Source: Hyalangium minutum (lineage in GTDB: Bacteria; Myxococcota; Myxococcia; Myxococcales; Myxococcaceae). From it: a DNA stretch of 64,000 nt. Both the position numbers and the translations under genes were made by a program. The notes beneath the pieces are model-generated. The model searched no databases, was not told where the DNA came from, and saw nothing but the letters and a program-made list of their open reading frames with translations. This document shows positions 610 through 64,000 of the stretch, one piece after another (position 1 is the first letter of the stretch; every line of letters begins with the position of its first letter). Location: NCBI RefSeq assembly GCF_000737315.1, contig NZ_JMCB01000021.1, positions 10,536 to 74,535 on the forward strand, read 5' to 3'.

Positions 610-610
610 C

Positions 611-2044: not shown

Positions 2045-2079
2045 GGTGGTCCTCCCCTTCTCTCTTCCGTGCTCGAACC

Positions 2080-9229: not shown

Positions 9230-10246
9230 ATGCAGACCCCCGAGGAAGGCAAGGTGCGCGTCGCCTTCGCCGAGCTCATTGACTTGGCCGCCGAGAAGGT
9301 GGGCGGCAAGGCCCTACTCGCCAATGACGAGTTCTTCGCCCCCAAAGAGAACCTGCTCAAGCCGGGCCGCGGCGTGTTCATCCCGGACAAGTACACCGAG
9401 TTCGGTAAGTGGATGGACGGCTGGGAGACGCGCCGCAAGCGCGTGCCGGGCTACGACTGGTGCATCCTCCAGTTGGGCCTGCCGGGCGTCATCCGCGGCG
9501 TGAACGTGGACACCCACCATTTCCTCGGCAACTTCCCCGAGTACGCCTCGGTGGACGGGCTGGAGGTGGAGGGCTCGCCCGACCCTGAGTCGCTCACGGG
9601 CGCGGCGTGGACGGAGATCGTCCCGAAGACGAAGCTGGTGGGCGGCACGCAGAACTACCTGCCCGTGGCCAGCGACCGGCGCTTCACGCACGTGCGCCTC
9701 AACATCTTCCCGGACGGCGGCGTGGCCCGCTTCCGCGTGCACGGCGTGGTGAAGCCGGACCTGGCGAAGCTGCGCTCGGGCGAGTTGGTGGACCTGGCGG
9801 CGGCGGAGAACGGCGGCATCGTCATCACCACGAATGACGCGTTCTTCGGGCCCAAGGACAACCTCATCCTCCCGGGACGCGCCGTGACGATGGGCGAGGG
9901 CTGGGAGACGCGCCGCAAGCGCGTGCCGGGCTTCGACTGGATCGTCGTCAAGCTGGCCGTGCCGGGCACGGTGCACAAGCTGGAGCTCGACACCAACCAC
10001 TTCAAGGGCAACTACCCGGACATGGCCTCGGTCGAGGGGTGCTTCCTGAAGGAAGACATCCTCGACTTCGCCAACGCGAAGGACATCGCCTGGCAGGAGA
10101 TCCTCCCTCGCACGAAGCTGCAGGCGCACCACCAGCACTTCTACGAGTCCGAGCTGCGCGCCCAGGGGCCCTTCACCCACGTGCGCCTGAACATCTTCCC
10201 GGACGGCGGCATCAGCCGGCTCCGGGTCCACGGGCGTCCTGCGTGA
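9230..10246 (+). CDS. alc: Allantoicase
   Basis: Two internal repeats, each with GWETRRKR and FTHVRLNIFPDGG. Confidence 0.95.
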   Translation: MQTPEEGKVRVAFAELIDLAAEKVGGKALLANDEFFAPKENLLKPGRGVFIPDKYTEFGKWMDGWETRRKRVPGYDWCILQLGLPGVIRGVNVDTHHFLGNFPEYASVDGLEVEGSPDPESLTGAAWTEIVPKTKLVGGTQNYLPVASDRRFTHVRLNIFPDGGVARFRVHGVVKPDLAKLRSGELVDLAAAENGGIVITTNDAFFGPKDNLILPGRAVTMGEGWETRRKRVPGFDWIVVKLAVPGTVHKLELDTNHFKGNYPDMASVEGCFLKEDILDFANAKDIAWQEILPRTKLQAHHQHFYESELRAQGPFTHVRLNIFPDGGISRLRVHGRPA

Positions 10247-10755
10247 ACAAGCTCGAGTGGCTCAATGGGCTGTCCCTCGAGGACGCCCAGGCGGAGCTCC
10301 TGCGGTGCTGCGGCTCGCACCGCTGGGCGGACGCCATGGCGCGGGCGCGTCCCTTCAAGGACGTGCCCTCCGTGTATGCGGAGGCCGGTTGGCTCTGGTC
10401 CCAAACGGGGCCAGAGGACTGGAAGGAAGCCATCTCTCACCACCCGCGCATCGGCGACGTGGAGAAGCTGCGCGAGCGCTTCAAGGCCTCCGGCGCCTGG
10501 TCCGAACAGGAGCAGAAGGGCATGGAGGGCGCCACCGAGGATGTGGTTCAGGCGCTCGCAGACGGCAACCGCGAGTACGAGGCGCGCTTCGGCTTCACCT
10601 TCCTCATCTGCGCCACGGGCAAGAGCGCCCGGGAGATGCTCGAGCACCTGCGCGAGCGCATGACGAACCCGCCGGCTCTAGAGCTGCGCATCGCAGCCGG
10701 CGAGCAGGCGCAAATCACCCGCCTTCGATTGGAGAAGCTCCTCACCTCGCCATGA
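10243..10755 (+). CDS. uraD: OHCU decarboxylase
   Basis: GTG overlapping the alc stop (GTGA); CCGSHRW, SHHPRIG, SEQEQ, YEARFGFTFLICA, EQAQITRLRL. Confidence 0.93.
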   Translation: MNKLEWLNGLSLEDAQAELLRCCGSHRWADAMARARPFKDVPSVYAEAGWLWSQTGPEDWKEAISHHPRIGDVEKLRERFKASGAWSEQEQKGMEGATEDVVQALADGNREYEARFGFTFLICATGKSAREMLEHLRERMTNPPALELRIAAGEQAQITRLRLEKLLTSP

Positions 10756-49100: not shown

Positions 49101-50225
49101 TCAGCGAGGCACCACTTCGTTGCAGGTGAGACCCTCGTCCGGAGCGCAGTTCTGCCCGATGAGGCAGCCGCCCACCCCGCGAAGATCCACGCAGCGCACG
49201 GGCCGGCAGTCTCCATCCGTCACGCACGGCTTGCGGCTCAGCGTGCACGAGCCCTGGCTGCAGGTGCCCTGCGCGCAGTCCGTGTCCAGCAGGCACGAGC
49301 AGTAGCCCAGCACATCGCCCTCGGCCACGTCACAGCGGCCCGCGCATGCGCCCACCTGCTCTCCCAAGCCCTTCACACACCCTCCACCGTGAGGGCAGTC
49401 CCCGTCCTCGTGGCAGGGCAGTGATGGATCCGGCGAGCACTCGGCGTCGGTGCGGCAGCGCGAGCGGCTGTAAGCCACCACCACGTCCGCGCATTGATAG
49501 CCATTGGGACAAACCTGCCCCCCGGAGCAATCCACGCCGCAGAAGGAGCCCCCTCCAGGCGCTGTCTCCACGAGGCAATAGTTGGCGCCCCGCCCGCACA
49601 CCTGGATGCCACCGCCATAGTTGCAGCTGGCGCAGTAGGGACGGCGAAGCGGATCCGCGTCGCTGTAGCAACGCGCTCGGGACTCACCAGCCGGAGTGCC
49701 GCAGCGCTCGCCGAAGGCACAGTCGCGCTCGGACGCGCAGAAGGCTGCGTCACAGACACCTACCGCACAGGCGGCGCGCCCCGCTTCATCCACCGCATCA
49801 CAGACACAAGCGGCGTCTCCACAGCGGCACGCCGTGCCTGGACAGTCGCCCGCGCTCCTGCAGCCCTCCTCGCACGCCGCACGCGAGGCGTCACAGACTT
49901 CGCCGGCCTCGCAGTGCAGATCCGTAGTGCAGCGCCCTCGCGCGAGACAGGTGCCGGTCGAGGTGTCACAGAAGAAGGCTGGGTCCGTGCAGTCCGCGTT
50001 CTTCTCGCAGCCCGCGCGCGGCTGGCAGAAGCCCGCAGGGTTGCACAGCTCGCCTGGGGCACACGCCGCGTCCGTGCGGCAGAGACACGCTCTGGAATCC
50101 GCATCGCAGCGATAGGCCTCCGCTGGCGCCCCACAATCCGAGGGCTCTCGGCAGGCCGCGCCGCCCTGGGTATCAGAGCAGGCAGCGAGCAGCAGCAGCA
50201 GGGCGAGAGGGCCGAAGCGGTTCAC
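49101..50225 (-). CDS. Cys-rich repeat lipoprotein (L5)
   Basis: GTG overlapping the L4 stop; LLAAC lipobox; many C-x5-C-x4/5-C repeats. Confidence 0.8.
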   Translation of the reverse strand: MNRFGPLALLLLLAACSDTQGGAACREPSDCGAPAEAYRCDADSRACLCRTDAACAPGELCNPAGFCQPRAGCEKNADCTDPAFFCDTSTGTCLARGRCTTDLHCEAGEVCDASRAACEEGCRSAGDCPGTACRCGDAACVCDAVDEAGRAACAVGVCDAAFCASERDCAFGERCGTPAGESRARCYSDADPLRRPYCASCNYGGGIQVCGRGANYCLVETAPGGGSFCGVDCSGGQVCPNGYQCADVVVAYSRSRCRTDAECSPDPSLPCHEDGDCPHGGGCVKGLGEQVGACAGRCDVAEGDVLGYCSCLLDTDCAQGTCSQGSCTLSRKPCVTDGDCRPVRCVDLRGVGGCLIGQNCAPDEGLTCNEVVPR

Positions 50226-53200
50226 GGGCGGATCTGTTCCTGGCGGGCCAGCGCATACGCGGTCCACGAGATGGGGGACAGCGTGTCATAGGTCCAGCGG
50301 TCATATTGGAAGCGCGGCACGCGGCTGGTGGTCAGCTCCGCACGGAGCACGGCTCCCTGCGGGAGCGTGGCGCGCAGCACTTCCAAGGCCGGGGCAGGCA
50401 TCGTCACCTGGGCCATCCCGCCTGGCATGATCACCGTCCATCGTGGGCCTCCGGTGGTTCCCAGCTCCGCGAGGACGAGCTGCTGTACATCCGGCGTCGC
50501 GCTGCCCTCCGCACGCCATGCCAGCTGACCTTCGAAGCGACCGCCCTGAGCGGGTGTGGTGAAGGTGGGAAGTGGCAACACGGGTCCCAACGTCACCCCT
50601 TGGGACAGAGCACCTGACTGCCGGTGGTAGAGCAGGCTCTGCGGGTATGCGGTGGTGCCTCGAAGCAAGTCGAGGAAGAGAAAGCTCGACCCATCGAGCC
50701 GAGGGAAGAACGGGAACGTGAGCTGCGGCCCGGAGCCTGTCACAGCCGAGGAGAGCCGCGTCCCCGTGCCCCAATTGGACGGGTGCGGGACGAACCCTTC
50801 CGAGCCCAGCTCCAGCCATGCGTAGACCTCATGCAGCGCGGGAACTCCGCCCACGCGCACAGGGCCCTCGGCGGTGAGTGGCGCGGTGACATCCAGGTGC
50901 ATGTCGAGCACCACGTCCCTGCCTTCCGCCACCCGGGTGCTGGAGGCAGCAATGCCTCGGTGGATGCCCAGCAGATATGGCTCGAACTCCGTGTCCCTCA
51001 CCACTCCCAGCACCGCGTAGACGGCTCGCAGCCCTGGCTGGGCGTGGACTCGGAAGGCGCCGCCATCCACGCGCAGCTTCCACGTGTCCTGGGTCCGGTC
51101 TCCCACGCCTCCGAAGGGTGGGCCTCCTGCGGGGCTCGACTGGGCAACGAAGACGCGCGCTTCCAGTTCCTCGTCGGACCCGAGTGGCCGGGGAGGCTTG
51201 AACCCACGCACCCGTCCTGTGATGACCGCCGAGGGAGGAAGCGGCGGATCGCCGGGGTTGGCTTCGCTCCCGATGCGGCGGAGGAAGACCGTCAGGTTCT
51301 CCGCTCGAATGTCAGTGACGGTGACGGCGTCGTAGCCCTCCTTATAGGCCGTCACCATCTGCGCTCCAGCGAGCCGCGTGTCCGAGAACGTCAGCTGTCC
51401 CCGCGCGTCCGTGCTTCCTTGAAAGGGTGTCGCCGAATCCGTGCCGAGCATCACCTTCGCCCCAGACACCGGTGCACCATAGGAGCCAAACGAGGAGTTC
51501 AGCACCGTGACGTTGAGCGTCCCGGTGAATGGCGCACCCGACAGTCCACCAGGGCCACGCGGGTCGAAGAAGGTGAAGCCCTGGGGCAGTGCGGCCCGAG
51601 AGCTTCCTCGCATCACGGCGACTTCCACGGAACCCAGGCTCGCAGGCGGCGTGCGGCAGGTGAGTGTGTGGGCATCCACCCGCTGCACGTCTCGCGCGGG
51701 CTCGCCTCCAAAGGTGACCGTGGTGCCCTCCTCCAGGCCGTCGCCTCGGAGTGTGACGAGGGTGCCCCCCGCGATGGCTCCTTGCGCAGGCTCGACCTGG
51801 CCGAGCAGGAGCGGAGCCTCGTAACGGAAGACCTCGGGCAGCACGGCCTCGTTCTCTGGGTCACTCGCGGCTTGGACATGGAGGTCATTTGCAGGACCAC
51901 TTGCCCCTGGAGGGGTAGTGAAGTGGAGCCGAGACTCACCCTCGACAGAGGTGGACAGAGCCGCCTGCGCGCTGACCGATACCCTGGCATCAGAGGGAAG
52001 TTGAGCCCCTTCGAGGAGCACGTCTGTCCCGCCTGCGAGCGGTCCGATCGAGGGGACCACAGAGGTCAAGGCGAGCTTGAAGGTGTACCCATCTTGGAGG
52101 CTCGCGCTCGCTGTGCCCTGGGCTGCGGTCACCGTCACGATGCGCGGCAGAGTTCCTCGTACGGGGACAGTGACCCCAACGGTGGTGAAGTTCACGGCAC
52201 CGGGGACCCCGGCTACGGGCTGGCCACCGAAGCTCACAGACAGTCCTGGTGCATCCAGCCCCTGCCCCGTCAACGTCACCGTGCCATCCGGCCGCGCGCC
52301 TACGTGCGGAAAGACTCCATAGAGCGCGAAGGGCCCAGCGGCATCGACATAGGTGAAGCCACTGCGAGCTGACCAAGAATCTCTCGGTGTGACGATGCGC
52401 ACCTCTACTGCACCTAACGTCGTGCCAGGAGGCGTGGTGGCTGTGATGCGCGTCGGACTCTCCACGGTAAAGGCGGCGGCGGGAACACCTCCGAAGAGCA
52501 CGTCCGTGGCCCCGCCGAATCCCTGACCCGAGAGCACCACCGAGGTCCCTCCTGCGAGAGGTCCCGTCAGTGGAGCCACATCCGTGATGCGCAGATCCTC
52601 GCTGTAGCGATAGGCCCGGCGCAGGGCGCCTCCTTCACCTCCTCCGAAGATGCGGACCTCCACGCTGTCCGCTGCGCGGCCCCTCGGGACCACGGCGCGC
52701 AGCTCCGTGGAAGAGAGGCGCGTCACCGTGGGACTCGTAAAGACACCGAAGAGCACCCGTGTCTCATCCGTAAAGCCGGAGCCCATCAACGTGACGGTGT
52801 TGCCTCCCGCCAGTGGCCCGCTCTCGGGAGAGACCGTGCGCAAGGTGAGTGGCTCGAACCACGTGAAGCAGCCATCGCAGACCGCAAGCCCTCGGGGATT
52901 CTCCAAGGTGATGCCCGCGGACCCTGCTGGACCGGGAGGTGTGCGCAGCTCGAGCAAGGTGTCGTCGATGATCTGGAAGTCCCGCACCGGAACTCCACCG
53001 ACCTTGAGCACCGTGCGCTTCGCGGCTTCCGTGGTGCTGCTCGCCACTCCGAGCAGGTACCCACTGCCCCTTACCGTGATCCACGTCCCTCCGCCGCTCT
53101 CTCCGCGCGCAGGCAGAGCTCCGAGGATTCGAGGCGGAGGCGGCACTCCCGCATCCGTTCCTCCATCCGTGGGCCCCGCGTCCGGCCGACCTGCATCCGC

Positions 53201-53317
53201 AGGCCCAGGAGTCCCTGCGTCGTCGGAAACTCCGCCATCCACACTCGGCCGGCGCTCTCCACCGCAGGCGGCGAGCAGGCACAAGAGCACGACGCTCAGG
53301 CGTGCACGTCCGCTCAT
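50222..53317 (-). CDS. IPT/TIG repeat lipoprotein (L4), six IPT domains plus C-terminal beta domains
   Basis: ATG overlapping the L3 stop; LLAAC lipobox; PDAG linker; six P..G...GG..VTL.G.G repeats. Confidence 0.85.
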   Translation of the reverse strand: MSGRARLSVVLLCLLAACGGERRPSVDGGVSDDAGTPGPADAGRPDAGPTDGGTDAGVPPPPRILGALPARGESGGGTWITVRGSGYLLGVASSTTEAAKRTVLKVGGVPVRDFQIIDDTLLELRTPPGPAGSAGITLENPRGLAVCDGCFTWFEPLTLRTVSPESGPLAGGNTVTLMGSGFTDETRVLFGVFTSPTVTRLSSTELRAVVPRGRAADSVEVRIFGGGEGGALRRAYRYSEDLRITDVAPLTGPLAGGTSVVLSGQGFGGATDVLFGGVPAAAFTVESPTRITATTPPGTTLGAVEVRIVTPRDSWSARSGFTYVDAAGPFALYGVFPHVGARPDGTVTLTGQGLDAPGLSVSFGGQPVAGVPGAVNFTTVGVTVPVRGTLPRIVTVTAAQGTASASLQDGYTFKLALTSVVPSIGPLAGGTDVLLEGAQLPSDARVSVSAQAALSTSVEGESRLHFTTPPGASGPANDLHVQAASDPENEAVLPEVFRYEAPLLLGQVEPAQGAIAGGTLVTLRGDGLEEGTTVTFGGEPARDVQRVDAHTLTCRTPPASLGSVEVAVMRGSSRAALPQGFTFFDPRGPGGLSGAPFTGTLNVTVLNSSFGSYGAPVSGAKVMLGTDSATPFQGSTDARGQLTFSDTRLAGAQMVTAYKEGYDAVTVTDIRAENLTVFLRRIGSEANPGDPPLPPSAVITGRVRGFKPPRPLGSDEELEARVFVAQSSPAGGPPFGGVGDRTQDTWKLRVDGGAFRVHAQPGLRAVYAVLGVVRDTEFEPYLLGIHRGIAASSTRVAEGRDVVLDMHLDVTAPLTAEGPVRVGGVPALHEVYAWLELGSEGFVPHPSNWGTGTRLSSAVTGSGPQLTFPFFPRLDGSSFLFLDLLRGTTAYPQSLLYHRQSGALSQGVTLGPVLPLPTFTTPAQGGRFEGQLAWRAEGSATPDVQQLVLAELGTTGGPRWTVIMPGGMAQVTMPAPALEVLRATLPQGAVLRAELTTSRVPRFQYDRWTYDTLSPISWTAYALARQEQIRP

Positions 53318-54792
53318 GGGAACTCCACCTGGAAGGTGTAGCCGTTCGTCGCGCGGGCATCGTCTCCCGAGACTCGGGCGGTGAGGGTCTTGCCTCCCAC
53401 GGCCCCCGCCGGAAGTGCGACGACTGCACCCGATGGGTCCTCCGAGCAGCCCAGCTCCGTGGAGCCCTCGAACAGGCACAGACGCAACAGCCCACTTGCA
53501 GCCGAGTAGTTCGACAAAGTGGCCCTCACCCCGCGCCCCGCAGGCACCGACAGCGTGAAGTGGTCCATGTCCTGGGGACAGATGACACCCTCCACCACTG
53601 TCCCCGAAGCGTAAGGCTTCGCCGTCGAGGGAGTATCGTTGGGCTCTTGCCCGTCATCGTCACAGGGCGTGCCGCGCGAGAGGAAGAAGCCGACATCGTA
53701 GTGCTGCGCGGGAGCCAGCGTGGAAACCCGGACCACGTATGTGCCCGGAAGCGCCGCGACGAAAGAGGCAAGCATGCGCCCCGAGGACAGCACCCGTCCC
53801 CCTGCGTCCAAGATGACCGTGGAGAAGGAGGACTCCGCGAGGGGATCTCCCTCGACGTTCACTCCCAGCTGATCTCCTCTCTCCAGTGCCATCGCGAAGT
53901 GGTCCACATCCCCCGCGCACAGGGTCAGCTCGAGGTACTGGCTCGCGCTCACCGGGAAGGCCACCGAAGGTGAGTCATTCGGCTCCAGCGCATCCGCCTG
54001 GCAGGCCCGGGGCACACAGGTCCCCGTGCCGATGTCACAGCGCTGGCTCGCGGAACAAGTCTCATCGGAGGTGCAGGGCGGAGGACGCTCCAGGCAAGCT
54101 CCCGTCGGCACATGACAGGACAGCGGGACCCGGCAGTCCCGATCCGAGTAGCAACGAGGCGTCACCGCGCAGCGGCCCGCGGCATCACACAGGAACCCGG
54201 GCCCACACTCCGCGCTCTCGACGCACTGGACACAGCGGCTCCCGGCACAGCGTTCGCCCGGGGCGCAGACGAGCGAGCCGTTCGCTTCTGTGCAGCGAGG
54301 GACACAGGCATGCAGCCCCGTGTTGCAGATCTCGCTGGCGCCGCAGTCCGCGTCCTCGAGACAGCCGAGGTCCTCTTCGCACACGAGATTCCCAAGGTTG
54401 CACCGCTGTCCCGTGGGGCACTCGTCTTTCGTCCCCGAGGGACAAAGGCTGACGGCGATCCGTGGCAGGCACTGGCCCTGATGACACCAGGCGCCCAGAG
54501 CGCACTCCTCGTTGCGCGCGCAGTCCCCGCCCCAGCCCTCGCGCCAGGAGCAGACGCGAGCCTCCGCGTCACATCGCTCCGTCAGCCGACACTGGCCGTT
54601 CGACTCGCACGAGCCGCAGACCCCTTCTTGCGCGCAGACTTGCCCTCCCGGGCAGTCCTCTCGCCGCTCGCAGGCCTGAGGATGAACTCCGGCATCGGGC
54701 CGTGGCGAGGGCTTTGACTCCGAGCAGGCTCCCCAGGCGAGCACGATCAGTCCGAGAGAGAGCGCTCGCACGGCAACAGAGGCCAGGGTCAC
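53314..54792 (-). CDS. Cys-rich repeat plus 2x PPC-like domain lipoprotein (L3)
   Basis: GTG overlapping the L2 stop; AWGAC lipobox-like; Cys repeats; EPND motifs preceding CxxDxDxF beta domains. Confidence 0.8.
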   Translation of the reverse strand: MTLASVAVRALSLGLIVLAWGACSESKPSPRPDAGVHPQACERREDCPGGQVCAQEGVCGSCESNGQCRLTERCDAEARVCSWREGWGGDCARNEECALGAWCHQGQCLPRIAVSLCPSGTKDECPTGQRCNLGNLVCEEDLGCLEDADCGASEICNTGLHACVPRCTEANGSLVCAPGERCAGSRCVQCVESAECGPGFLCDAAGRCAVTPRCYSDRDCRVPLSCHVPTGACLERPPPCTSDETCSASQRCDIGTGTCVPRACQADALEPNDSPSVAFPVSASQYLELTLCAGDVDHFAMALERGDQLGVNVEGDPLAESSFSTVILDAGGRVLSSGRMLASFVAALPGTYVVRVSTLAPAQHYDVGFFLSRGTPCDDDGQEPNDTPSTAKPYASGTVVEGVICPQDMDHFTLSVPAGRGVRATLSNYSAASGLLRLCLFEGSTELGCSEDPSGAVVALPAGAVGGKTLTARVSGDDARATNGYTFQVEFP

Positions 54793-56219
54793 GGCACCTC
54801 CGTGATGACGCCTGCGGGCCAGCTCACGTCTGCCACGCTCCACGCATCCCCTTGATGCGAGAGCATTCGCCGGAACTCCCCCTTCAACACTCCGCGCTCG
54901 TACACGCGCACGGTCGCCGTGCTTCGAGGATCCACAGCCCCGTTCTCCCGGGCGAAGACCACCGCCAGCCGGTAGCTCCCAGGGGCCGGCTCTCCGTAGC
55001 CGAACACCTCCGGCCCATATCCCGTGAGCGCATCCCGCAGCAGCTCCGGATCATCCTGAGCCACTCCCAGCGTGCCCCAGTCGGGACGAGGGTTCGCATA
55101 GTGGCAGTCGTCCGGGATGCTCCCGAGCGCCGCTCCCGCGTCCCTCAGCACGTGGAGATCCAGATCCGTCACCGCGTTGTCCCAGAACATCTCCACCAGG
55201 AGCTGTTGAGCGGGCGCCGCCACCACCTTCGCCCGGGCGGGTGCCACACTCCGAGCCCCTGCCGCATCCGTTACATGCAGCTCCACCTCATATTCACCCG
55301 GTACCGCCGCATCCAACCGCAGCACCGTGCGCGCGGCCGCCGGCTCCGCGATGAACGCCTGTGCCCCCACGGGCCGCGAGCGCAACACCCATTGGTACGT
55401 CAGCGGCGTGTCCCCATCCGGATCCATCGAGCCCGTCCCATCGAGCACCACCTGCTGTCCCGGCTCGCTCGTGTCCAGCGGCACCACCACGGGCACGGGC
55501 GCCCGGTTCACCGAGCCTCGCAGCTCCACCGTGGCCTCACGCCGCCCCGGTGCCGTGGTTCGCAGCAGCACCGCACCGCCCAAGGCTCCCGAAGCTCCCA
55601 CAGGCGCCGCGCAGCGCACGGTGAGTTGCACGTCGCTTCCCTGCTCTATCACCGCAGGTGTCCGCACCGAGCCCACGAGACTGAAGGCTTCACTCGTGCC
55701 CAGGGCAAGGCGGAGATCCTCCAGCACCAGATCCGCCGTGCCTCTTGCGCCGAGCGAGAACGCGCGGGCCACAGCCTGTCCCTCGGGGACGCGGCCAAAG
55801 TCGAGCACGGCTGGCTCCAGCTCCAATGCCGCCGCTGTCCGCCCCTCCCCTGTGAGCGCAACCTCCACCACCCCGCGCTCCATGTCGTCCGTTTCCACCA
55901 CCAACGTGGCCCGGTACACCGCCTCTGTGGGTGGCACGAACGCCACCCGGACCCCCTCCTCGCTCCCCGCACTCACGCTCTCCGGCACCGAGAGCACTCG
56001 GAACGGCGCGTCCGCCTCCTGAATGCGGACGCCGTACACTCGCAGCCCCGCGCGTCCCGCGTTGACGAGGGGCACCTCTCCCGTTGCCTCTCGGAGCACG
56101 GGCACCGTGCCCAGCTCCAGTGTTGCCGGAGGAGCCACCAGCCGGGGCCGCACCTGCTGCGCCACATCGCCGCCACATGCGGCACACAGCAGCGCAAGTC
56201 CAAGCGCCCCCCCCCTCAC
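54789..56219 (-). CDS. Lipoprotein with 2x choice-of-anchor D Ig domains, PKD-like and YfaP-like domains (L2)
   Basis: GTG overlapping the L1 stop; LCAAC lipobox; LELGTVP/LDFGRVP, LDGTGSMDPDG, WDNAVTDLDLHV, GYGPE. Confidence 0.8.
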   Translation of the reverse strand: MRGGALGLALLCAACGGDVAQQVRPRLVAPPATLELGTVPVLREATGEVPLVNAGRAGLRVYGVRIQEADAPFRVLSVPESVSAGSEEGVRVAFVPPTEAVYRATLVVETDDMERGVVEVALTGEGRTAAALELEPAVLDFGRVPEGQAVARAFSLGARGTADLVLEDLRLALGTSEAFSLVGSVRTPAVIEQGSDVQLTVRCAAPVGASGALGGAVLLRTTAPGRREATVELRGSVNRAPVPVVVPLDTSEPGQQVVLDGTGSMDPDGDTPLTYQWVLRSRPVGAQAFIAEPAAARTVLRLDAAVPGEYEVELHVTDAAGARSVAPARAKVVAAPAQQLLVEMFWDNAVTDLDLHVLRDAGAALGSIPDDCHYANPRPDWGTLGVAQDDPELLRDALTGYGPEVFGYGEPAPGSYRLAVVFARENGAVDPRSTATVRVYERGVLKGEFRRMLSHQGDAWSVADVSWPAGVITEVP

Positions 56220-57322
56220 CGCGTGCCCTCCTCGAAGTACCTCACCTCCACGCGTGCGCCGAGGCCGGGCACGGAGCGGCCCGCGAAGAAGACTGCTCCC
56301 CGCTCCGCCTCGTAGCGCCACCCGTCCTGGCCCTCGCGCCGAGGTGTGCATACCGTCCCCAAGGCCTCTGCAGGCTGGCCCTCACAGGCTGTGCGATCCA
56401 CGGCCTCGCAGTCCGCCACCGCTTCCGCCGAGACTCCGCACGGGTAGCGAACGTGGACCTCGATCGTCTCCGGATCCGGGGTGTGCGACAGCACGAACGT
56501 CCGTCGCAGCCCCACCGCACTCGTCGCCAGCGCTCGCAGCGTGTCCGCAAACTCGGCGTCGCAGATGCTCCCCACTTCTCCGCCTGTCAGTCTCGCCAGC
56601 TCCTGATAGCGGCTGCCCGGCGTCGCTCCGCAGGCATTCGTGGGCACATCCCCCATGATGGCGGAGGCCACCACCGTGCCGTCATTGCCGACGCCCTGAG
56701 CTTGCTCGAACGCCCGCCAGTACGCGCGCAGCTCATAGGGCGAGCGGTCCTCCTCATCCGTGACGAAGACGAGGTACAGGAACGCTCCCGGGCGCAGGAA
56801 CGGCACGGGGTAGCGCACGGCACAGTCCTCGTGGCAGGCCTCGGTGTCACACCCGGCCTCGCATGTGGCGAGCGCCGCCTTCCACGGTGCTCCCTCCTCC
56901 GCCTGCCGCTCCAGCACCAGCCGCGCGGCCTCCAGTCCCGCCTCGTACGCGCTGCCCGAAGTGCCCACCCGCACATTCCGGGCGAAGGCGCTCTCCAGAT
57001 CCGGCGTGTCCGGCGCCAGCAGCGCGGGCGTGCCCACCAGCTCACCGGGCCGCGCGAAGATGTCCGTCGTCGTGACGGCGAGCCGGAAGTCGATGCTCCC
57101 CTGCCGGAACAGGCGAATGAACGCCTGGAAGTTGCGCGCGAGGTTCTCCTGCCTCGGCGCCATCGAGCCCGAGTTGTCCACCACCCACAGCACGTCCACC
57201 TTCGAGGCGGACCGCTGCGCATAGGTGTCCACGCGCAACCCCGGTGGGAGCGCGGACACCAGACGGTCATCCCGGCATCCGGTGACAAGAAGCGCCAGGA
57301 GGGCGACAGCGGCTCGACGCAT
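56216..57322 (-). CDS. von Willebrand factor A lipoprotein with Cys-rich inserts (L1)
   Basis: LVTGC lipobox; MIDAS DNSGS, VTTTD, FVTDEED. Confidence 0.88.
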   Translation of the reverse strand: MRRAAVALLALLVTGCRDDRLVSALPPGLRVDTYAQRSASKVDVLWVVDNSGSMAPRQENLARNFQAFIRLFRQGSIDFRLAVTTTDIFARPGELVGTPALLAPDTPDLESAFARNVRVGTSGSAYEAGLEAARLVLERQAEEGAPWKAALATCEAGCDTEACHEDCAVRYPVPFLRPGAFLYLVFVTDEEDRSPYELRAYWRAFEQAQGVGNDGTVVASAIMGDVPTNACGATPGSRYQELARLTGGEVGSICDAEFADTLRALATSAVGLRRTFVLSHTPDPETIEVHVRYPCGVSAEAVADCEAVDRTACEGQPAEALGTVCTPRREGQDGWRYEAERGAVFFAGRSVPGLGARVEVRYFEEGTR

Positions 57323-57403
57323 GGACACGCGGCACGTTAGCCAATCCCCCGCGCTTGCGCCCGGCAGGAGACGCCCGGCCGCCCTCCCCTCAGCCACAGG
57401 CCT

Positions 57404-58084
57404 TCACCCCAACTCCTCCTTCCGCTCCAGGCGCTTGGCTTGGAGCCAGGCCGCGAGGCGCTCAGCCTCGGGGACATCCTTGAGCGTCAGCAGCTTCAAG
57501 GAACGCTCTTCCTCCTTCTGCTCGCTCCTCACGTGCACCGTGCTCACGCCGCGCCGACGCTGGGAGGCTGTGATCTCGACCTCCACCTGGGAGATCTCCG
57601 AGTACCGCACGAAGCTCGGCTCTCCTTCTCCGCTCGCCTCGAACCCGTCTTCCTTCAGGTCCCACCCATCCCTCGAGCGGGAGATATCCGCGAAGCGCGC
57701 CACGCCCCACGCCACGAACACCCCGAGGAAGATCAGCGCCCACACGCCAAGCTGCTCCCTTCCGAACAGCGCCAGAACTCCCAACGGCGTCAGGAACGGC
57801 AGGGCCTCCCGCAACCGGCGCCGCATCGACACATGCGGCAGGATCCGCAGAGGCGGGGCCAACACCTCGGGGAGCCGAGGCAATCTCTGCGGCCGTCCCT
57901 CCCTCAGCCTCTCCAGCTCACCGCGCAGCCGGTCCCGCTCGGCCGTCAGCCGCTGAATCTTCTCCCGAAGCCCGGCGTTCTCCCCCGGCAGCGGCCCCAG
58001 CGCGCGCCGCTCGGCATTCAGCGTGTCCTCGATCTGCTCGATGGCCTGGGAGACCTCGGGGTCGATAAAGCGCTCACCCGACAT
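57404..58084 (-). CDS. Coiled coil plus 2 TM plus PH-like domain protein
   Basis: Heptad N-terminus, two hydrophobic helices, VRYSEISQVEV...GVSTVHV; 11-nt overlap with the upstream paralog. Confidence 0.7.
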   Translation of the reverse strand: MSGERFIDPEVSQAIEQIEDTLNAERRALGPLPGENAGLREKIQRLTAERDRLRGELERLREGRPQRLPRLPEVLAPPLRILPHVSMRRRLREALPFLTPLGVLALFGREQLGVWALIFLGVFVAWGVARFADISRSRDGWDLKEDGFEASGEGEPSFVRYSEISQVEVEITASQRRRGVSTVHVRSEQKEEERSLKLLTLKDVPEAERLAAWLQAKRLERKEELG

Positions 58085-58817
58085 GCGCAGCCTCCTTCGG
58101 AAGGCGGGCCCGCTCCCGGAGCCACTCGGCGAGCCGCCGCGGATCATCGAGCATGTCGATGTCCACGGTACGGTTCGGATAGTTCACGGCCTTCCCAATG
58201 GACGTCGGCACGCCAGGCTTCCAGATGATGCGCACAGAGCCGAACCCAAACAGTCTCTGCAGCCACCCCTGGCGGACCTCCACACTCTGGATCTCCGAGT
58301 AGAGGATCTTGCCCTTCAGCGCCTCCGTCCCCTCCAGCGAGAGCCCCTCCTCGTCAAAGCCCCAGGCGGACTGCACGTCGTCATCATCTTCCGGCCCCTG
58401 GAGGACGTAGAGGAGCGCCAGGCACAGCAGCAGCAAGCCGCCGTACGTGGCGAGGCGATGCAGCGAGCCGATCACCGAGCTGCCGAAGTAGAGGAAGATC
58501 GCCACGCTCGAGGGCAGCATCTTCAGGGCGTAGCGCAGCCGCCCGTAGGCGGTCCGCCGCGAGGGCGTGGCGCGGAAGGGCAACACCAGCTGATCCGGCA
58601 GGGAAGAGGCAGGGCGCTCGGCCTCGGCCTGGGCCACCTCGGCCATCCGGCTCAGCCAGCGGACCTCCTGCTCCAGCCGATCCACCTGCTCGGCCAGCTC
58701 GGCGTTCTCCCGGGGCAGGGTCTCCCGCTGGCAACGGGTCTCGCGCAGTTCCTCCTGGAGCCGCTCCAGCTCGTCGCGCTGCGAGCGGCCTGAGTCAACC
58801 TGGGTCCGGGTGCTCAC
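58074..58817 (-). CDS. Coiled coil plus 2 TM plus bacterial PH (bPH_2-like) domain protein
   Basis: ILYSEIQSVEVRQGWLQRLFGFGSVRI motif. Confidence 0.75.
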   Translation of the reverse strand: MSTRTQVDSGRSQRDELERLQEELRETRCQRETLPRENAELAEQVDRLEQEVRWLSRMAEVAQAEAERPASSLPDQLVLPFRATPSRRTAYGRLRYALKMLPSSVAIFLYFGSSVIGSLHRLATYGGLLLLCLALLYVLQGPEDDDDVQSAWGFDEEGLSLEGTEALKGKILYSEIQSVEVRQGWLQRLFGFGSVRIIWKPGVPTSIGKAVNYPNRTVDIDMLDDPRRLAEWLRERARLPKEAAHVG

Positions 58818-58880
58818 GCACCGCAGCGTAACAAAGCGCCCGCGCGAGACTCCATGGCCCGTGAGGAGCCCGGAAGAGGC

Positions 58881-59810
58881 CTACTTCTTCGGAGCCGCCG
58901 GCTTGGCGGGCGTAGCGGGCGCGGCGGCCTTCTTCGTCGGCGCCAGCCCCTTGTAGAGCATCTCCAGGTACACGGGCTCCTTGATGAAGAAGTTGCCCCA
59001 GCTCTTGTACTTCTCCGGCAGGCCCTCGGCCTTCACCTGCTCCAGCGTCTTGCCCGCATCACGCTTGGCGCGGACGATGGACGTCGTCTCCTTCAGCATG
59101 GCCAGCGCGCGTTCCATGTCCTCCTTGGCCGCCATCGGCCCATGGCCCGGGATGATCTTCACGCCCGGCGGCAGGCTCTGGACGATCTTCTCCAGGTTGG
59201 CCAGGTAGCCGTCCGGGGTGCCGCCGTTCTCCATGTCGAAGAACGGGAACGTGTCCACGACGAACTGATCGCCCGTGTGCATCACGTTGGAGCCGGTGAA
59301 GTACACCACCGTGTCTCCGTCCGTGTGCCCCGCCGGGTAGTGCGTCAGGCGGATCTCCTCGCCGTTGAAGAAGAGGGACATCGCGTTGTCATAGGTGATG
59401 ACGGGCAGTCCCTCCTTGGGCAGCGCCGGCACCGGGTTGCCGAAGATCTTCTGGTCGTTGGCCAGGCGCACGCGCACCTGATCCTGCGCCACGATACGGG
59501 CCTCCTTGCCAAAGGTGGTGTTGCCGCCCGTGTGGTCGAAGTGCCAGTGCGTGTTGAGCACGTACTGCAGCTTCCCCTTGTTCAGCTTGGCGAGGGCCGC
59601 CTTGATCTTCTCCGCGAGCGGCTGGAACTGGTCATCCACGATCAGGATGCCGTCCGGGCCCACCGACGCCGCGATGTTGCCACCTTCGCCCGTGAGCATG
59701 TGCACGTTGCCAGCGACGGGTGCCGACTTCACCTCGACCTTCGAGAAGTCCTGCTGCTGGGCGAGTGCCAGAGCAGGGACGAACGCCAGGGCCGCAACGA
59801 GGGCTTTCAT
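58881..59810 (-). CDS. Secreted MBL-fold metallo-hydrolase (cyclase-like)
   Basis: Signal peptide; NTHWHFDHTGGN, GHTDGD, HTGD, IPGHG. Confidence 0.92.
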   Translation of the reverse strand: MKALVAALAFVPALALAQQQDFSKVEVKSAPVAGNVHMLTGEGGNIAASVGPDGILIVDDQFQPLAEKIKAALAKLNKGKLQYVLNTHWHFDHTGGNTTFGKEARIVAQDQVRVRLANDQKIFGNPVPALPKEGLPVITYDNAMSLFFNGEEIRLTHYPAGHTDGDTVVYFTGSNVMHTGDQFVVDTFPFFDMENGGTPDGYLANLEKIVQSLPPGVKIIPGHGPMAAKEDMERALAMLKETTSIVRAKRDAGKTLEQVKAEGLPEKYKSWGNFFIKEPVYLEMLYKGLAPTKKAAAPATPAKPAAPKK

Positions 59811-59885
59811 TCGAGAACAACTCCAAGGGTAGAGCGTGTGTGCGCGGCACCTTACCCGCTCTCCCCCCGCGAGGAAGCGGTTTCG

Positions 59886-60518
59886 CTAGCGGTTCCAGGG
59901 GCAGTCCACCACGTTCACCGTGCGCGTCAGCGCCGGCGCCGTGTGGCCCGCTCCATCCGAGAGCTCGTACAGCAGCGTGTAGGTGCCCTCGACCCAGCCG
60001 TTCACGTAGCCCGTCTGCACCACCTCGCTCGTGAGATCCCCGTAGCACACGTCCGACGCCGTGAAGCCCGGATCCTCGAAGTTCGTGCCGCACGCGTGCG
60101 TGATGTCCGCGTCCCCATTGAGCGTCAGCGTCGGCGTCTGCGTGTCCTGCACATTCACCGTGCGGATGACGTCCGCCGAGTTCCAAGCTTCGTCGTGCGC
60201 CGCGTACTGCACGTAGTAGATGCCCTCGGCGCTGGCGTTGGGACCTGGGCCGTACTCGTCATTGCCCGAGTTGTAGGTGATCACCGGCAGCGGGTTGCCC
60301 TCCGCATCCGTCGCGGTGGCCCCCGGGTCGCTCCAAGAGTCCACGCCGCACTCCAGCGTCAGCTCCGCGGCGCCGTTGAGCGTCACCGTCACCGCTCCGT
60401 CCAGCGACTGGCCCTTCCGCGCCAGCAGCTCCTCTCCCTCCAGGGCCGCACCGCCACAGCCCACCAGGGACAGTCCAAGCGTGCTGATCAGCACCTTCCA
60501 GGTCTCGTTGATGCGCAT
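59886..60518 (-). CDS. Lipoprotein with two DUF5011-like Ig domains
   Basis: LVGC lipobox; repeated TLNG..LEC..DPGATATD..G / DPGFTASD..G. Confidence 0.85.
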   Translation of the reverse strand: MRINETWKVLISTLGLSLVGCGGAALEGEELLARKGQSLDGAVTVTLNGAAELTLECGVDSWSDPGATATDAEGNPLPVITYNSGNDEYGPGPNASAEGIYYVQYAAHDEAWNSADVIRTVNVQDTQTPTLTLNGDADITHACGTNFEDPGFTASDVCYGDLTSEVVQTGYVNGWVEGTYTLLYELSDGAGHTAPALTRTVNVVDCPWNR

Positions 60519-60898
60519 GGTTTCCTCCTCGAGTTCACGCCGGGTTGCTGGAGCCATTGAGCGCCCGCGGAGAGAAAACTGGGAGGTCCTCACCGGTCAC
60601 AAAAAATGAATGTTCTCAGGAGGTTGGCTGCTCACGTCCAGAGCGCAAATCGAGGTAGCGACCCACCCCAGGTGGGTGGCAGCCGACACCCGATTCCGGA
60701 CACGCGCTCCGAGCAGGACCGTCCTCCAAAGGGGCCACCGCACACCATGAGCGCGGAAGACTCGAAAGTGCCGTGGTCCCCTGCTTCCACTCCAGAGCGG
60801 CAGGCTCCGAGATACAGCCCCATCGTGTTTTTCCCGCGAAACCACTACGCTGCGGACCCATTCGCTCCCCTCTGCTCTTGCCGGACCGGAGAACCCCC

Positions 60899-61141
60899 AT
60901 GCGCCGCACAGCTCTCGCCGTTGCTACTGCGTTCGTCCTCGGTGCGCTCAGCCACGCTGCCTATGCCGCCAGCCCTCCGAAGATCGAGGACGGGCTCACG
61001 TACCTGCGCTACGCGCTCAACGCGCTCAAGCGCGCCGAGGTGAAGGACAAGGCCACCGCCAGCCGCGACCAAGCCGTCCAGCTCACCGAGAAGGCCATCG
61101 AGGAAGTGAACAAGGCCATCAAGGCCAACGCGGAAAAATGA
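60899..61141 (+). CDS. Small secreted helical protein
   Basis: Signal peptide ending AYA; two amphipathic helices; GGAG SD. Confidence 0.7.
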   Translation: MRRTALAVATAFVLGALSHAAYAASPPKIEDGLTYLRYALNALKRAEVKDKATASRDQAVQLTEKAIEEVNKAIKANAEK

Positions 61142-61295
61142 TCCGTGCCAAGGGGGTCTCTTTGGACTCCTCACGGGGAGAAACCTTCTTAGGCAACTGG
61201 AATTCTCTCCGGGCGATAACCCCCACAAGGGGAGGTGCTGCCACCTCCCGCCCCGGTGAGCCGAACCGGGAGCTCCTGTCTTCACGAGGTACGTC

Positions 61296-64000
61296 ATGTC
61301 TGTCAGCAACGTCGGTGGTGGTGGTTCTTCCAACCGGGCGAATGATCGCGATGAGCCCAAGGTCCAACCGAAGCCGAAGGATCCTCCGAAGGCCGAGGGT
61401 GCCCAGGCGCAGCAGACGGGCACCAAGACGGCGAAGAACCAGGTCAAGCCCAACCAGGTGAAGCCGAAGTCGGACGGCTTCGAGACCCAGACGAGCTCGT
61501 CCAGCCAGCGCAGCCAGCAGCAGGCGATGCTCGGCTCCACCACGGCGCCCGAGAAGACGGAAGCCACTGAGCATGCCCAGGCGGGCGCGCTGGAGAAGCT
61601 GGGCCTGACGGCCGAGGACGTGGTGATGGCCGGCAACAACGCCGCGCCGCACCTGGAGAAGGCCGCGCAGGCCGCGGTGAAGGGCAACTACGAGGAGGCG
61701 CTCGGGCACCTGAAGGACGCGGCCACCTCGTCGCCGAAGATCGCCGAGAAGGCCGTGCGCGGGCTGGCGCAGAACCTGCCGGACGGCGTCGCCAAGACGC
61801 TGCTCACGGACAAGGCGCTCGTGCAGGAGTTGGTGAACAACAGCGCGCTCCACTCCTCCGTGGGTAAGCTCATCAAGAACCCCACGGACCTGGGTGCCGT
61901 GCGTGAGCTGGTCGGCAATGACAAGCTCCGTGACGCCACGCTCACCGCGCTGGGCAAGGACCCGGGCGTCCAGGCGCAGCTGGAGAAGATTGGCCTCACG
62001 CCTGAGGACCTCGTCCAGGCGGGCAAGGCCGCTCCGAAGCTGATCGAGTCCTTCGAGAAGCTCCAGGCGGGCGATGTGAAGGGCGCCCTCACGGACTTCC
62101 AGAAGGCCGTGGAGGCCGCTCCGGATCTGGCCGCCAAGCTGGGCCAGAAGCTGCTCGACAAGGTGCCCCAGGGCATCAAGGACCAGTTCGCCAAGCTCGG
62201 CATCACCCCCGAGGCCCTGCAGAAGTCCGGCGACGCCCTCCCCCACCTCTATGACGCCGCCGATGCGGCCGCGAAGGGCGAGTGGCAGAAGTCCTTCGAC
62301 AGCCTCAAGCAGGCCGCGGGTGCCGCGCCCGAGGTGGTGCAGCAGGCCATCAAGGGTCTGGCCAAGCAGCTCCCCGACAGCCTTGGGGCCGTCAAGTCGC
62401 TGCTCACCGACGACGCGTTCGTGAAGGAGCTCGCCACCAACAAGGACCTGCATGATCAGGTCGGCAAGCTCTTCAATGACTCCACGCGCATGGAGGGCCT
62501 GCGCGGGCTGCTGGGCAACGACAAGGCCCGCGACGCCGCGCTCACCGCACTGGGCAATGATCCGGGCGTCAAGGCGCAGCTCGAGAAGATCGGCCTGACG
62601 CCGCAGGACCTCGTCCAGGCGGGCAAGGCTGCTCCGAAGCTCTGGGACGCCTTCGAGAAGCTCCAGGCGGGCGATGTGAAGGGCGCCCTCACGGACTTCC
62701 AGAAGGCCGTGGAGGCTTCTCCGGATCTGTCCGCCAAGCTGGGCCAGAAGCTGCTCGATAAGGTGCCCCAGGGCATCAAGGACCAGTTCGCCAAGCTCGG
62801 CATCACCCCCGAGGCCCTGCAGAAGGCCGGCGCGGCTCTGCCCAAGCTCTATGACGCGGCGGATGCGGCGTCCAAGGGTGACTGGAAGGGTGCCTACAGC
62901 GCCCTCAAGGATGCCGCCGCTGCTGCTCCGGATGTCGCGACCCAGGCTCTCAAGGGTCTGGCCAAGCAGCTCCCGGACAGCCTTGGCGCTGCCAAGTCCC
63001 TGCTCACCAACGATGCGTTCCTCAAGGAGCTCGTCTCCAACAAGGACCTGCAGGGCTCGCTCGAGAAGCTCGTCGGTGGCGACACCAGCGCCATCAAGGA
63101 CCTGCTGCGCAACGACAAGGCTCGCGACGCCGCGCTCACCGCCATCGGCAATGATCCGGGCATCAAGGCTCAGCTGGAGAAGATCGGCCTGACGCCGCAG
63201 GACCTGGTCGCCGCGGGCAAGGCCGCTCCGGCCATCATGGATGCCTTCGAGAAGCTCCAGTCGGGCGACGTGAAGGGCGCCCTGACTGACTTCCAGAAGG
63301 CCGTGGAGACCTCGCCCGAGCTGGCCGCCAAGCTGGGCCAGAAGCTGCTCGACAAGGTCCCCCAGGGCATCAAGGACCAGTTCGCCAAGCTGGGTATCAC
63401 TCCCGAGACGCTCCAGAAGTCGGGCGCCGCTCTGCCCAAGCTCTATGAGGCCGCGGACGCTGCTTCGAAGGGTGACTGGAAGGGTGCCTACAGCGCCATC
63501 AAGGACGCGGCGGCCGCCGCTCCGGAGCTGGCGACTCAGGCCCTCAAGGGTCTGGCCAACCAGCTGCCCGACAGCCTCGGCGCTGCCAAGTCCCTGCTCA
63601 CCAACGATGCGTTCCTCAAGGAGCTTGTCTCCAACAAGGACCTGCAGGGCTCGCTCGAGAAGCTCGTCGGTGGTGACACCAGCGCCATCAAGGACCTGCT
63701 GCGCAACGACAAGGCCCGTGACGCCGCTCTCACTGCCATCGGCAACGACCCGGGCATCAAGGCTCAGCTGGAGAAGGCCGGCCTCACCCCTGAGGACCTG
63801 GTCGCCGCTGGCAAGGCCGCTCCGGCCATCATGGATGCCTTCGAGAAGCTCCAGTCGGGCGACGTGAAGGGCGCCCTGACTGACTTCCAGAAGGCCGTGG
63901 AGACCTCGCCTGAGCTGGCCGCCAAGCTCGGCCAGAAGCTGCTCGACAAGGTCCCCCAGGGCATCAAGGACCAGTTCGCCAAGCTGGGTATTACTCCTGA
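61296..64000 (+). CDS. Large alpha-helical tandem-repeat protein, 3' partial (at least 901 aa; not in the ORF track)
   Basis: ATG at 61296 with GAGG SD; open GC3-rich frame to the window end; MSVSNVGGGGSS...SDGFE N-terminus followed by repeats. Confidence 0.9.
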   Translation, partial: MSVSNVGGGGSSNRANDRDEPKVQPKPKDPPKAEGAQAQQTGTKTAKNQVKPNQVKPKSDGFETQTSSSSQRSQQQAMLGSTTAPEKTEATEHAQAGALEKLGLTAEDVVMAGNNAAPHLEKAAQAAVKGNYEEALGHLKDAATSSPKIAEKAVRGLAQNLPDGVAKTLLTDKALVQELVNNSALHSSVGKLIKNPTDLGAVRELVGNDKLRDATLTALGKDPGVQAQLEKIGLTPEDLVQAGKAAPKLIESFEKLQAGDVKGALTDFQKAVEAAPDLAAKLGQKLLDKVPQGIKDQFAKLGITPEALQKSGDALPHLYDAADAAAKGEWQKSFDSLKQAAGAAPEVVQQAIKGLAKQLPDSLGAVKSLLTDDAFVKELATNKDLHDQVGKLFNDSTRMEGLRGLLGNDKARDAALTALGNDPGVKAQLEKIGLTPQDLVQAGKAAPKLWDAFEKLQAGDVKGALTDFQKAVEASPDLSAKLGQKLLDKVPQGIKDQFAKLGITPEALQKAGAALPKLYDAADAASKGDWKGAYSALKDAAAAAPDVATQALKGLAKQLPDSLGAAKSLLTNDAFLKELVSNKDLQGSLEKLVGGDTSAIKDLLRNDKARDAALTAIGNDPGIKAQLEKIGLTPQDLVAAGKAAPAIMDAFEKLQSGDVKGALTDFQKAVETSPELAAKLGQKLLDKVPQGIKDQFAKLGITPETLQKSGAALPKLYEAADAASKGDWKGAYSAIKDAAAAAPELATQALKGLANQLPDSLGAAKSLLTNDAFLKELVSNKDLQGSLEKLVGGDTSAIKDLLRNDKARDAALTAIGNDPGIKAQLEKAGLTPEDLVAAGKAAPAIMDAFEKLQSGDVKGALTDFQKAVETSPELAAKLGQKLLDKVPQGIKDQFAKLGITP
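61590..64000 (+). repeat. Intragenic tandem repeat, period 594-600 nt (198-200 aa)
   Basis: Anchor CTxGAGAAG (LEK) at 61980, 62580, 63174 and 63768; later copies nearly identical at the DNA level. Confidence 0.95.

Follow-up and report, generated by a model that had tools for sequence, protein, structure and literature searches.

Among the described systems that come closest to the locus reported here are the HEAT, ARM and TPR solenoids (karyopherins, CAND1, the OGT TPR domain), the SKWP effectors RipS and XopAD, the pore-forming colicins, the P-loop nucleoside-monophosphate (NMP) kinases together with Fap7/hCINAP, and the effector-chaperone and toxin-immunity pairs. The locus lies at the end of a 64,000-nt stretch of DNA from the myxobacterium Hyalangium minutum (contig NZ_JMCB01000021.1, positions 10,536 to 74,535), which is called the window below and in whose coordinates positions are given. 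It encodes the first part of a giant helical-repeat protein, while the second part and a small partner gene were found on another contig. According to the best explanation of our data, the two genes form an accessory module, and the window contains the 5' half of one of them. Neither the giant protein nor its partner is in any described family; giant bacterial helical-repeat proteins as a kind are already known.

With the HEAT, ARM and TPR solenoids the giant protein shares the continuous array of short antiparallel helices, and scattered sub-threshold TPR matches are found in it. However, its repeat is a composite of 198-200 aa with about 14 helices instead of a unit of 34-47 aa, and no Foldseek match at E ≤ 0.001 was obtained (template modelling score, TM, ≤ 0.17). 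In their general features RipS and XopAD resemble it as all-helical tandem-repeat proteins of about 2,000 residues with a disordered N-terminus and without a signal peptide or an enzymatic domain. Their repeats have a length of ~42 aa and they belong to type III secretion system (T3SS) regulons of plant pathogens, whereas the giant protein shows neither T3SS linkage nor a plant-inducible promoter (PIP) box, and has a conserved C-terminal domain and an obligate partner. The parallel to colicins consists in a helical domain of ~200 aa at the C-terminal extreme and a small convergent gene downstream. In contrast to colicins, the giant family stays below transmembrane hydrophobicity, gives no sequence match, has a soluble partner with a kinase fold, and its N-terminal two-thirds are a solenoid and not receptor and translocation domains. 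The partner has the fold of adenylate, UMP-CMP, gluconate and shikimate kinases and of Fap7, but it lacks Walker A, is only 8-16% identical in sequence and has no Pfam or PDB sequence match. Effector-chaperone and toxin-immunity pairs also combine a large protein with a small cytoplasmic one that is dedicated to it and strictly linked one to one, with paralogues keeping their own partners. Here, however, the genes are usually convergent and not operonic, no delivery machinery is encoded nearby, and the partner fold differs from those of known chaperones and immunity proteins.

Repeat anatomy and assembly of the giant gene

Translation of the window revealed 901 codons without a stop, from the ATG at 61296 to the last base at 64000 on the plus strand (Table 1). 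The GC content at third codon positions (GC3) is 0.89 in this frame and 0.70 and 0.42 in the other two, and this highest value in a window of 68% GC identifies it as the coding frame; it is absent from the list of open reading frames (ORFs) because it runs off the window end. The ATG and the Shine-Dalgarno sequence GAGG are kept in three orthologous loci (L001, L002 and L003). Direct repeats recur in the frame at a spacing of 594-600 nt and the top self-match offset of the window protein is 198 aa. These super-repeats were missed by Tandem Repeats Finder, since its longest period is 500, and the program reported just a 15-nt micro-repeat.

Each super-repeat of 198-200 aa consists of one A unit (129-131 aa) followed by one B unit (69 aa). 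The A units start at aa 99, 298, 498, 696 and 894 and open with LEKLGLTAEDV or FAKLGITPEAL; the one at 894 is cut, its eighth codon being the last of the window. The B units start at aa 229, 429, 627 and 825, open with LEKIGLTPQDL, and are 25-40% identical to the first 69 residues of the A unit. Super-repeats 1 and 2 share 65% aa and 77% nt identity, 2 and 3 share 76% and 83%, and 3 and 4 share 95% and 92%, so that in the last pair conservation is higher at the protein than at the DNA level. An earlier note on this DNA, made from the sequence without database searches, had described the open frame missed by the ORF track and related units of 69 and about 129 aa, and our analysis agrees with it in these respects. 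Its description of the later copies as nearly identical is roughly right for super-repeats 3 and 4, which are very similar but not identical. It had also proposed recent expansion or homogenisation of the repeats, and this is supported by the comparison with orthologues. Units 1 and 2 of the window have clear positional orthologues (81% and 88-89%, respectively), while the identity between units 3 and 4 amounts to 95% and that of either to any orthologous unit to at most 91%. Being closer to each other than to the orthologous units, they point to a duplication or gene conversion that affected the central part of the array in this lineage.

The window protein is listed in the public collection as a 901-aa product, and its gene runs to the last base of contig JMCB01000021.1 (assembly GCA_000737315.1; 74,535 bp), thus the gene is cut by an assembly break and not by the choice of the window. 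In the same assembly, the first base of JMCB01000022.1 is also the start of a 955-aa H. minutum protein annotated as 'partial' (P0017), whose N-terminal ~96 residues align in register with the last ~96 residues of the window protein. The corresponding 293-nt overlap of the contig ends shows 94.9% identity. Because of the 15 differences in 293 nt, 13 of which fall on third codon positions, the two ends represent different repeat copies and not the same DNA. Between the copies inside the window, DNA differences amount to 8-28%. This confirms that the repeat copies, whose differences are mainly synonymous, are real; they are not the assembly artefact that the earlier note had considered. Naive joining of the contigs leads to a protein of 1,759 aa with seven super-repeats, a number shared with the two closest orthologues. 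The mismatches in the overlap imply at least one further unit, which would result in ~1,957 aa and eight units. Judged from the contig sequences, the full H. minutum protein should therefore have roughly 1,760-1,960 residues and at least 7-8 super-repeats.

This is a clear case of a short-read assembly breaking a gene inside its own repeats, and as a consequence the public annotation contains two 'partial' proteins and an apparently spurious antisense ORF. The latter is a 444-aa gene (window 61119-62453, minus strand; L011 2824-4158) which overlaps the giant ORF and looks like a shadow ORF, since GC3 favours the plus-strand frame (0.89). Shadow ORFs are a kind of artefact that high-GC genomes produce.

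Table 1. Coordinates of the giant gene, its parts and its partner gene in H. minutum.
Feature	Sequence	Position	Strand	Basis or remark
Shine-Dalgarno GAGG	window	61286-61289	+	6 nt 5' of the ATG; read from the sequence
Start codon and disordered leader, aa 1-98	window	61296-61589	+	translation, motifs, pLDDT ~30 in homologue
Super-repeat 1 (A 61590-61979, B 61980-62186)	window	61590-62186	+	most divergent copy; 81% to unit 1 of orthologues
Super-repeat 2 (A 62187-62579, B 62580-62786)	window	62187-62786	+	88-89% to unit 2 of orthologues
Super-repeat 3 (A 62787-63173, B 63174-63380)	window	62787-63380	+	95% aa / 92% nt to super-repeat 4
Super-repeat 4 (A 63381-63767, B 63768-63974)	window	63381-63974	+	repeat spacing, unit alignment
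Super-repeat 5, first 8 codons	window	63975-64000	+	cut by the end of JMCB01000021.1; continues on JMCB01000022.1
3' half of the giant gene	L012 (JMCB01000022.1)	1-2868		starts at base 1; 293-nt overlap with the window end compared
Partner gene	L012	2937-3446	-	68 bp past the stop of the giant gene; outside the window

An obligate partner with a kinase-type fold

Extension of the gene to its C-terminus and downstream neighbours, which the earlier note had recommended, yielded on JMCB01000022.1 the 3' half, the C-terminal domain and a small partner gene. A partner gene encoding 167-174 aa is located 14-3,188 bp downstream of the giant gene in 13 of 13 distinct loci (three Hyalangium-like loci, the second H. 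minutum contig, two Archangium loci, one each from Dyella and Frateuria, and five metagenomic loci). A profile derived from six of these downstream genes matches all 13 (E-values between 6e-27 and 6e-87), and the neighbours other than the partner differ from locus to locus. Archangium primigenium contains two divergent copies of the module, with the giant proteins P0013 (1,365 aa) and P0037 (1,258 aa; L008 8001-12295), and P0037 is followed after 14 bp by an own partner of 167 aa. The linkage of the two genes is a new finding and the most useful handle for experiments. In the partner of P0037, the usual Cys of the GCV.D motif is replaced. Between the giant gene and the partner, on the strand of the giant gene, L002 and L003 contain a gene for a membrane protein of the ceramidase family PF05875 (15281-16084 and 16497-17366, respectively, both on the plus strand). 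It was considered as a third member of the module and rejected, since it is absent from H. minutum (L012), from the other clades and from most loci.

The partner, annotated as 'hypothetical' in every source looked at, has no signal peptide, no Pfam match and no PDB sequence match. Its structure was predicted with a mean predicted local distance difference test (pLDDT) of 94.4 and a predicted TM (pTM) of 0.89. The model has the fold of P-loop NMP kinases (Foldseek probability 1.0, TM 0.5-0.62); each of the 20 PDB matches at E ≤ 0.001 is an NMP, gluconate or shikimate kinase. Even a relaxed pattern for Walker A (GxxxxGK[ST]) fails in 67 of 68 members of the partner family. In the sequences examined, the loop between beta1 and alpha1 has the form [SDN]-x-x-P-x(4-5)-W, for example SNEPGEPAPW, and includes the invariant P12 and W18. 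Invariant in the 13 loci are P12, W18, L51, P64, Y66, A69, R79, W87, Y90 and F164. We interpret this mainly aromatic set as a surface for binding and not for catalysis.

Solenoid, C-terminal domain, leader and distribution of the family

The fold of the giant protein was modelled with AlphaFold2 on the full-length Cystobacter homologue P0015 (1,150 aa, 51% identical) using an alignment of 32 sequences. In this model with a mean pLDDT of 76, residues 1-79 are disordered (pLDDT about 30), and residues 81-1004 form an unbroken run of short helices, about 14 per 200-aa super-repeat. A beta-hairpin at residues 1009-1020, at the conserved HF.IAG..LPFG motif, precedes four longer helices of low confidence (residues 1021-1133, pLDDT 50-65). 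The model thus supports an alpha-solenoid, as proposed before from the repeats, as a class without a specific relative. In the Foldseek search against PDB no match reached E ≤ 0.001, and the top rows, all non-significant, were IFT-A, karyopherins, CAND1, Ski3 and the OGT TPR domain. The predicted viral structures of BFVD also contain no significant structural match to the model. The repeat family was not recognised in the earlier note, and Pfam, NCBIfam and PDB searches gave no credible match for the giant protein. The Pfam scores of 36-38 bits for TPR_1, TPR_2 and TPR_11 are sums of weak matches without a stretch that is significant alone, and the same applies to the orthologue P0002. Nif11 (PF07862) matches one stretch at model positions 10-38 of 48, but none in P0002 or most relatives. 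Further Pfam and NCBIfam matches (DUF5828, PTS_IIA, TusA, calpain and others) are likewise summed weak repeat matches with zero or one significant stretch. The sole match in the PDB sequence search, the coronavirus S2 heptad region with E = 1.6e-4, reflects helical bias and is meaningless.

The suggestion of the earlier note that a functional domain may lie beyond the window is supported by all full-length members of the family. Their C-terminus coincides, to within 0-3 residues, with the end of a conserved region of about 340 aa outside the repeats, which is better conserved than the latter and in H. minutum is located on the next contig. Its last ~210 aa carry the motifs LPGSxGxxF, LN..V.SG, LPFG..G and S.P..G and a final F-x-x-x-[FL] tail. 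Neither Pfam nor a PDB sequence search gave a match for this domain. Only P, G, F, N, V, A and L occur as invariant residues in it, and at no position of its alignment is a His, Cys, Asp, Glu, Lys, Arg or Ser invariant. The lack of an invariant residue of catalytic type argues against an enzyme. The last ~100 residues carry the only hydrophobic peaks of the protein (1.4-1.65 in single sequences), the most hydrophobic helices being Gly/Ala-rich, near the end, and with a conserved Asp or Asn inside the putative hairpin. A tail anchor or another transmembrane segment was considered here and rejected, because hydrophobicity is too low: family-averaged Kyte-Doolittle values reach no more than 1.25, and charge-poor runs, defined as columns with <20% charged residues, extend over 12 columns at most. 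Three distant members (P0147, P0155 and P0164) have 200-400 further residues after the domain, for which a scan gave neither a Pfam match nor a toxin domain; P0164 also has a long Ala/Arg/Glu-rich N-terminal segment.

How rare the family is became evident from an exhaustive profile search with the C-terminal domain in 1.84 billion representative proteins, which resulted in 69 clusters only, all with the same architecture or fragments of it. None of the ten clusters for which names were looked up had an informative one. Only fragments were retrieved when the C-terminal 338 aa were used in a word-indexed homology search. We found no paper on the giant-protein family or on its partner in a literature search. 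Identity to the window protein is 81-85% for the homologues of Hyalangium (P0002, 1,568 aa; L001, 1,763 aa; L002, 1,738 aa), 51-66% for those of Vitiosangium, Archangium and Cystobacter, and 29-38% for those of other Myxococcota metagenome bins, Dyella and Frateuria. Full-length relatives have 1,150-2,000 aa and about 3-8 whole super-repeats. In Archangiaceae the number is integral, with four in Cystobacter, five in Archangium and Vitiosangium, six in H. gracile and seven in L001 and L002. Cysteine is strongly depleted in the giant proteins (0-3 per 900-1,570 residues). The family occurs patchily in Archangiaceae and in Dyella/Frateuria-like bacteria, that is in Myxococcota and Gammaproteobacteria, and in unrelated genomic contexts; this two-phylum distribution points to horizontal transfer. 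The orthologue in the metagenome bin L003 has a frameshift near its 5' end (about 10001-10300): the reading frame that opens with the conserved ATG is lost after ~95 codons, and the long ORF is picked up again at 10281. A sequencing error may account for this, or the copy may be a pseudogene. The UniRef name 'Avirulence protein' of P0022 from Dyella acidisoli is not backed by a domain match and was discarded; we can only guess that it may stem from a superficial likeness of the recurring GLTPxDL to transcription activator-like (TAL) effector repeats.

The 98-aa leader is rich in S, T, Q, P, K, A and G, has no hydrophobic core of a signal peptide, and contains DGFE at aa 60-63. It was described in a similar way before, as a disordered S/T/Q/P/K-rich segment of about 98 aa, and disorder is also predicted for the equivalent region of P0015. 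The motifs M-S-V..GGGG, PKP, DGFE and LGSTTAP of the window leader are clade-specific: Archangiaceae leaders keep M-[SA]-[VI]..GG, PKP, DGF[ED] and LG[ST]T, one other clade has the related SGFE, and leaders of the remaining clades are Ala/Lys/Glu-rich or Pro-rich without similarity. A 15-nt tandem repeat (AACCAGGTCAAGCCC, 1.9 copies, window 61437-61465, plus strand) encodes NQVKP-NQVKP in the leader. In orthologues this element is present once or as a variant, which suggests that the leader also changes by small slippage.

Upstream of the gene, the intergenic region at 61152-61272 (plus strand) contains several GC-rich hairpins, partly conserved in the orthologous loci, such as GGGAGGUG-CUGC-CACCUCCC at about 61230-61249. 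RNA folding of this region was unremarkable (z = -1.68), an Rfam search assigned it to no family, and a scan for sigma-70 promoters found nothing. Directly upstream lies an ORF of 80 aa (60899-61141, plus strand; MRRTALAVATAFVLGALSHAAYA followed by ASPPK...), which is a called gene in the public record. Its product has a clear signal peptide, a helical Lys/Glu-rich body and no Pfam match. In L001, L002 and L003 the ORF is conserved and varies in a codon-like manner. Farther upstream, a minus-strand block of cell-surface type (49101-60593) encodes a 1,085-aa protein with five TIG/IPT stretches, a PKD/Ig protein, an Ig-like surface protein, a metallo-beta-lactamase-fold protein, two bPH_2 proteins and several unknowns. 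By its gene sizes the block corresponds to the one upstream in L003 and to part of that in L002; since most of it is missing from L001, an insertion may be involved. Elsewhere the window is ordinary chromosome with genes for purine catabolism, PAS histidine kinases, ExbD and dehydrogenases.

Possible functions of the two-gene module

We tentatively favour the view that the module encodes a mobile, non-enzymatic effector or adaptor together with a cytoplasmic keeper protein. The giant protein is composed of a lineage-specific disordered leader of ~100 aa, a solenoid arm of 3-8 interchangeable super-repeats, and a conserved C-terminal head of ~210 aa, which is all-helical with one beta-hairpin and has moderately hydrophobic Gly/Ala-rich helices. 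It would work by binding and not by catalysis, with an arm length tuned by gain or loss of whole repeats. The partner could bind the giant protein and hold it in the cytoplasm of the producer as a dedicated keeper, chaperone or antidote; the giant protein would most likely be exported independently of Sec and act at or beyond the cell surface through its head. Physical interaction of the two proteins, non-catalytic action and export are what we infer from the data in addition to the observed linkage. On indirect and weak grounds we lean towards export, probably by a non-Sec route, because of the accessory and mobile behaviour of the module, the paralogous cognate pairs, the near absence of Cys and the disordered N-terminus. 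It is tempting to go further and to postulate an undescribed class of horizontally mobile weapon or interaction modules in predatory Archangiaceae and soil Xanthomonadales-like bacteria, combining a length-tunable solenoid exported without Sec, a new non-enzymatic head for binding membranes or targets, and a P-loop-less kinase-fold chaperone or antidote, but in this full form the proposal is unlikely. We know of no chaperone or antidote role for the kinase fold of the partner.

Several observations weigh against export with the help of a keeper. Secretion apparatus genes, VgrG/Hcp/PAAR, ATP-binding cassette and membrane fusion protein (ABC/MFP) genes or T3SS genes adjoin the module in none of the 13 loci, the other 60 kb of the window contain no secretion genes, and no recognised secretion or toxin domain was found in the giant protein. 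The partner gene is convergent to the giant gene in 12 of the 13 loci and on the same strand in one, so that the two are mostly not co-transcribed, and no known secretion chaperone has the fold of the partner. The low averaged hydrophobicity and the short charge-poor run of the C-terminal helices also speak against a head that enters membranes. In addition, alpha-solenoids are typical intracellular scaffolds. Marks of the individual export routes were likewise missing: for type VI secretion (T6SS), there was no MIX, FIX, PAAR or Rhs domain and no adjoining VgrG, Hcp or PAAR gene, and for type I secretion, no match to repeats-in-toxin (RTX) proteins and no adjoining ABC/MFP pair in the 13 loci. 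Downstream genes of 170, 494 and 170 aa in the orthologous loci, sized like TssB, TssC and Hcp, had suggested a T6SS neighbourhood, which was rejected since Pfam identified an adenylate cyclase and GreA, the remaining gene being the partner.

These absences, together with the missing signal peptide of the giant protein and the cytoplasmic nature of the partner, would fit an intracellular scaffold or molecular ruler, which we consider almost as likely as export, although doubtful in itself. Such a cytoplasmic solenoid, perhaps attached peripherally to the membrane by its head, would set a distance by its repeat number, and the pseudo-kinase would be its client or regulator. Copy number indeed shifts in whole units, the C-terminal helices are amphipathic and not transmembrane, and the nearest, though non-significant, Foldseek neighbours are intracellular solenoids. 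For a housekeeping scaffold, however, the rarity, the patchy spread over two phyla in unrelated contexts and the duplicated modules would be unusual, and neither the lineage-specific leader nor the strong depletion of Cys is expected. Closer attention to the head could lead to the idea of a colicin-like, membrane-active toxin, in which the ~210-aa domain inserts a hydrophobic hairpin and the convergent gene protects the producer. Immunity genes of pore-forming colicins are arranged convergently downstream, as is the small gene here, and a helical domain that closes the protein and carries its most hydrophobic, Gly/Ala-rich helices near the end, low AlphaFold confidence in this domain and no invariant residues of catalytic type would all suit a pore former. 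We nevertheless judge it improbable: the averaged hydrophobicity of 1.25 and a charge-poor run of 12 columns contrast with the expected uncharged hairpin of about 35-40 residues, a conserved Asp or Asn is located inside the 'hairpin', the partner is a soluble alpha/beta protein and not an integral-membrane immunity protein, and neither a colicin or pore-former match in Pfam nor a PDB sequence match was obtained.

The proposal of the earlier note, a T3SS effector with an N-terminal signal resembling leaders of putative myxobacterial effectors, started from the Sec-independent low-complexity leader with D-G/S-F-E, and the disordered polar N-terminus without signal peptide speaks for it. Giant helical-repeat effectors do exist in the RipS/XopAD SKWP family, and a distant relative bears the database name 'Avirulence protein', a name without domain support. 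Our data do not sustain this proposal and make it very unlikely. DGF[ED] is confined to Archangiaceae and the leader is not conserved between clades, T3SS genes are absent from all 13 loci, no PIP box (TTCGB-N15-TTCGB) is present upstream in the gammaproteobacterial loci L004 and L006 (Dyella and Frateuria), and the partner fold is neither that of class I or II T3SS chaperones nor TPR. A phage-derived protein of the tape-measure type or an anti-phage defence pair might also be long, all-helical, repetitive, variable in length and encoded in a mobile two-gene module. This explanation is already effectively refuted, since PHROG and BFVD gave no significant match, PADLOC assigned no family to three giant proteins and three partners, tblastn found no match in 50,697 phage records and 72,556 plasmids, and phage genes are absent from all 13 loci. 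We therefore keep, with the caution stated above, to the view of a mobile effector or adaptor with a dedicated cytoplasmic keeper.

Myxobacterial genomes harbour many giant 'hypothetical' repeat proteins, few of which offer an experimental handle. For the protein described here such handles now exist in the form of its full-length architecture, a C-terminal domain without relatives, an obligate partner with a pseudo-kinase fold and a distribution over two phyla. Thereby concrete tests become possible, such as those of binding, of partner-dependent stability or toxicity, and of localisation. If the giant protein is exported, it would represent a new type of effector with a keeper in the poorly known arsenal of myxobacteria other than Myxococcus. 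If it is not exported, it would be an unusual bacterial scaffold of variable length.

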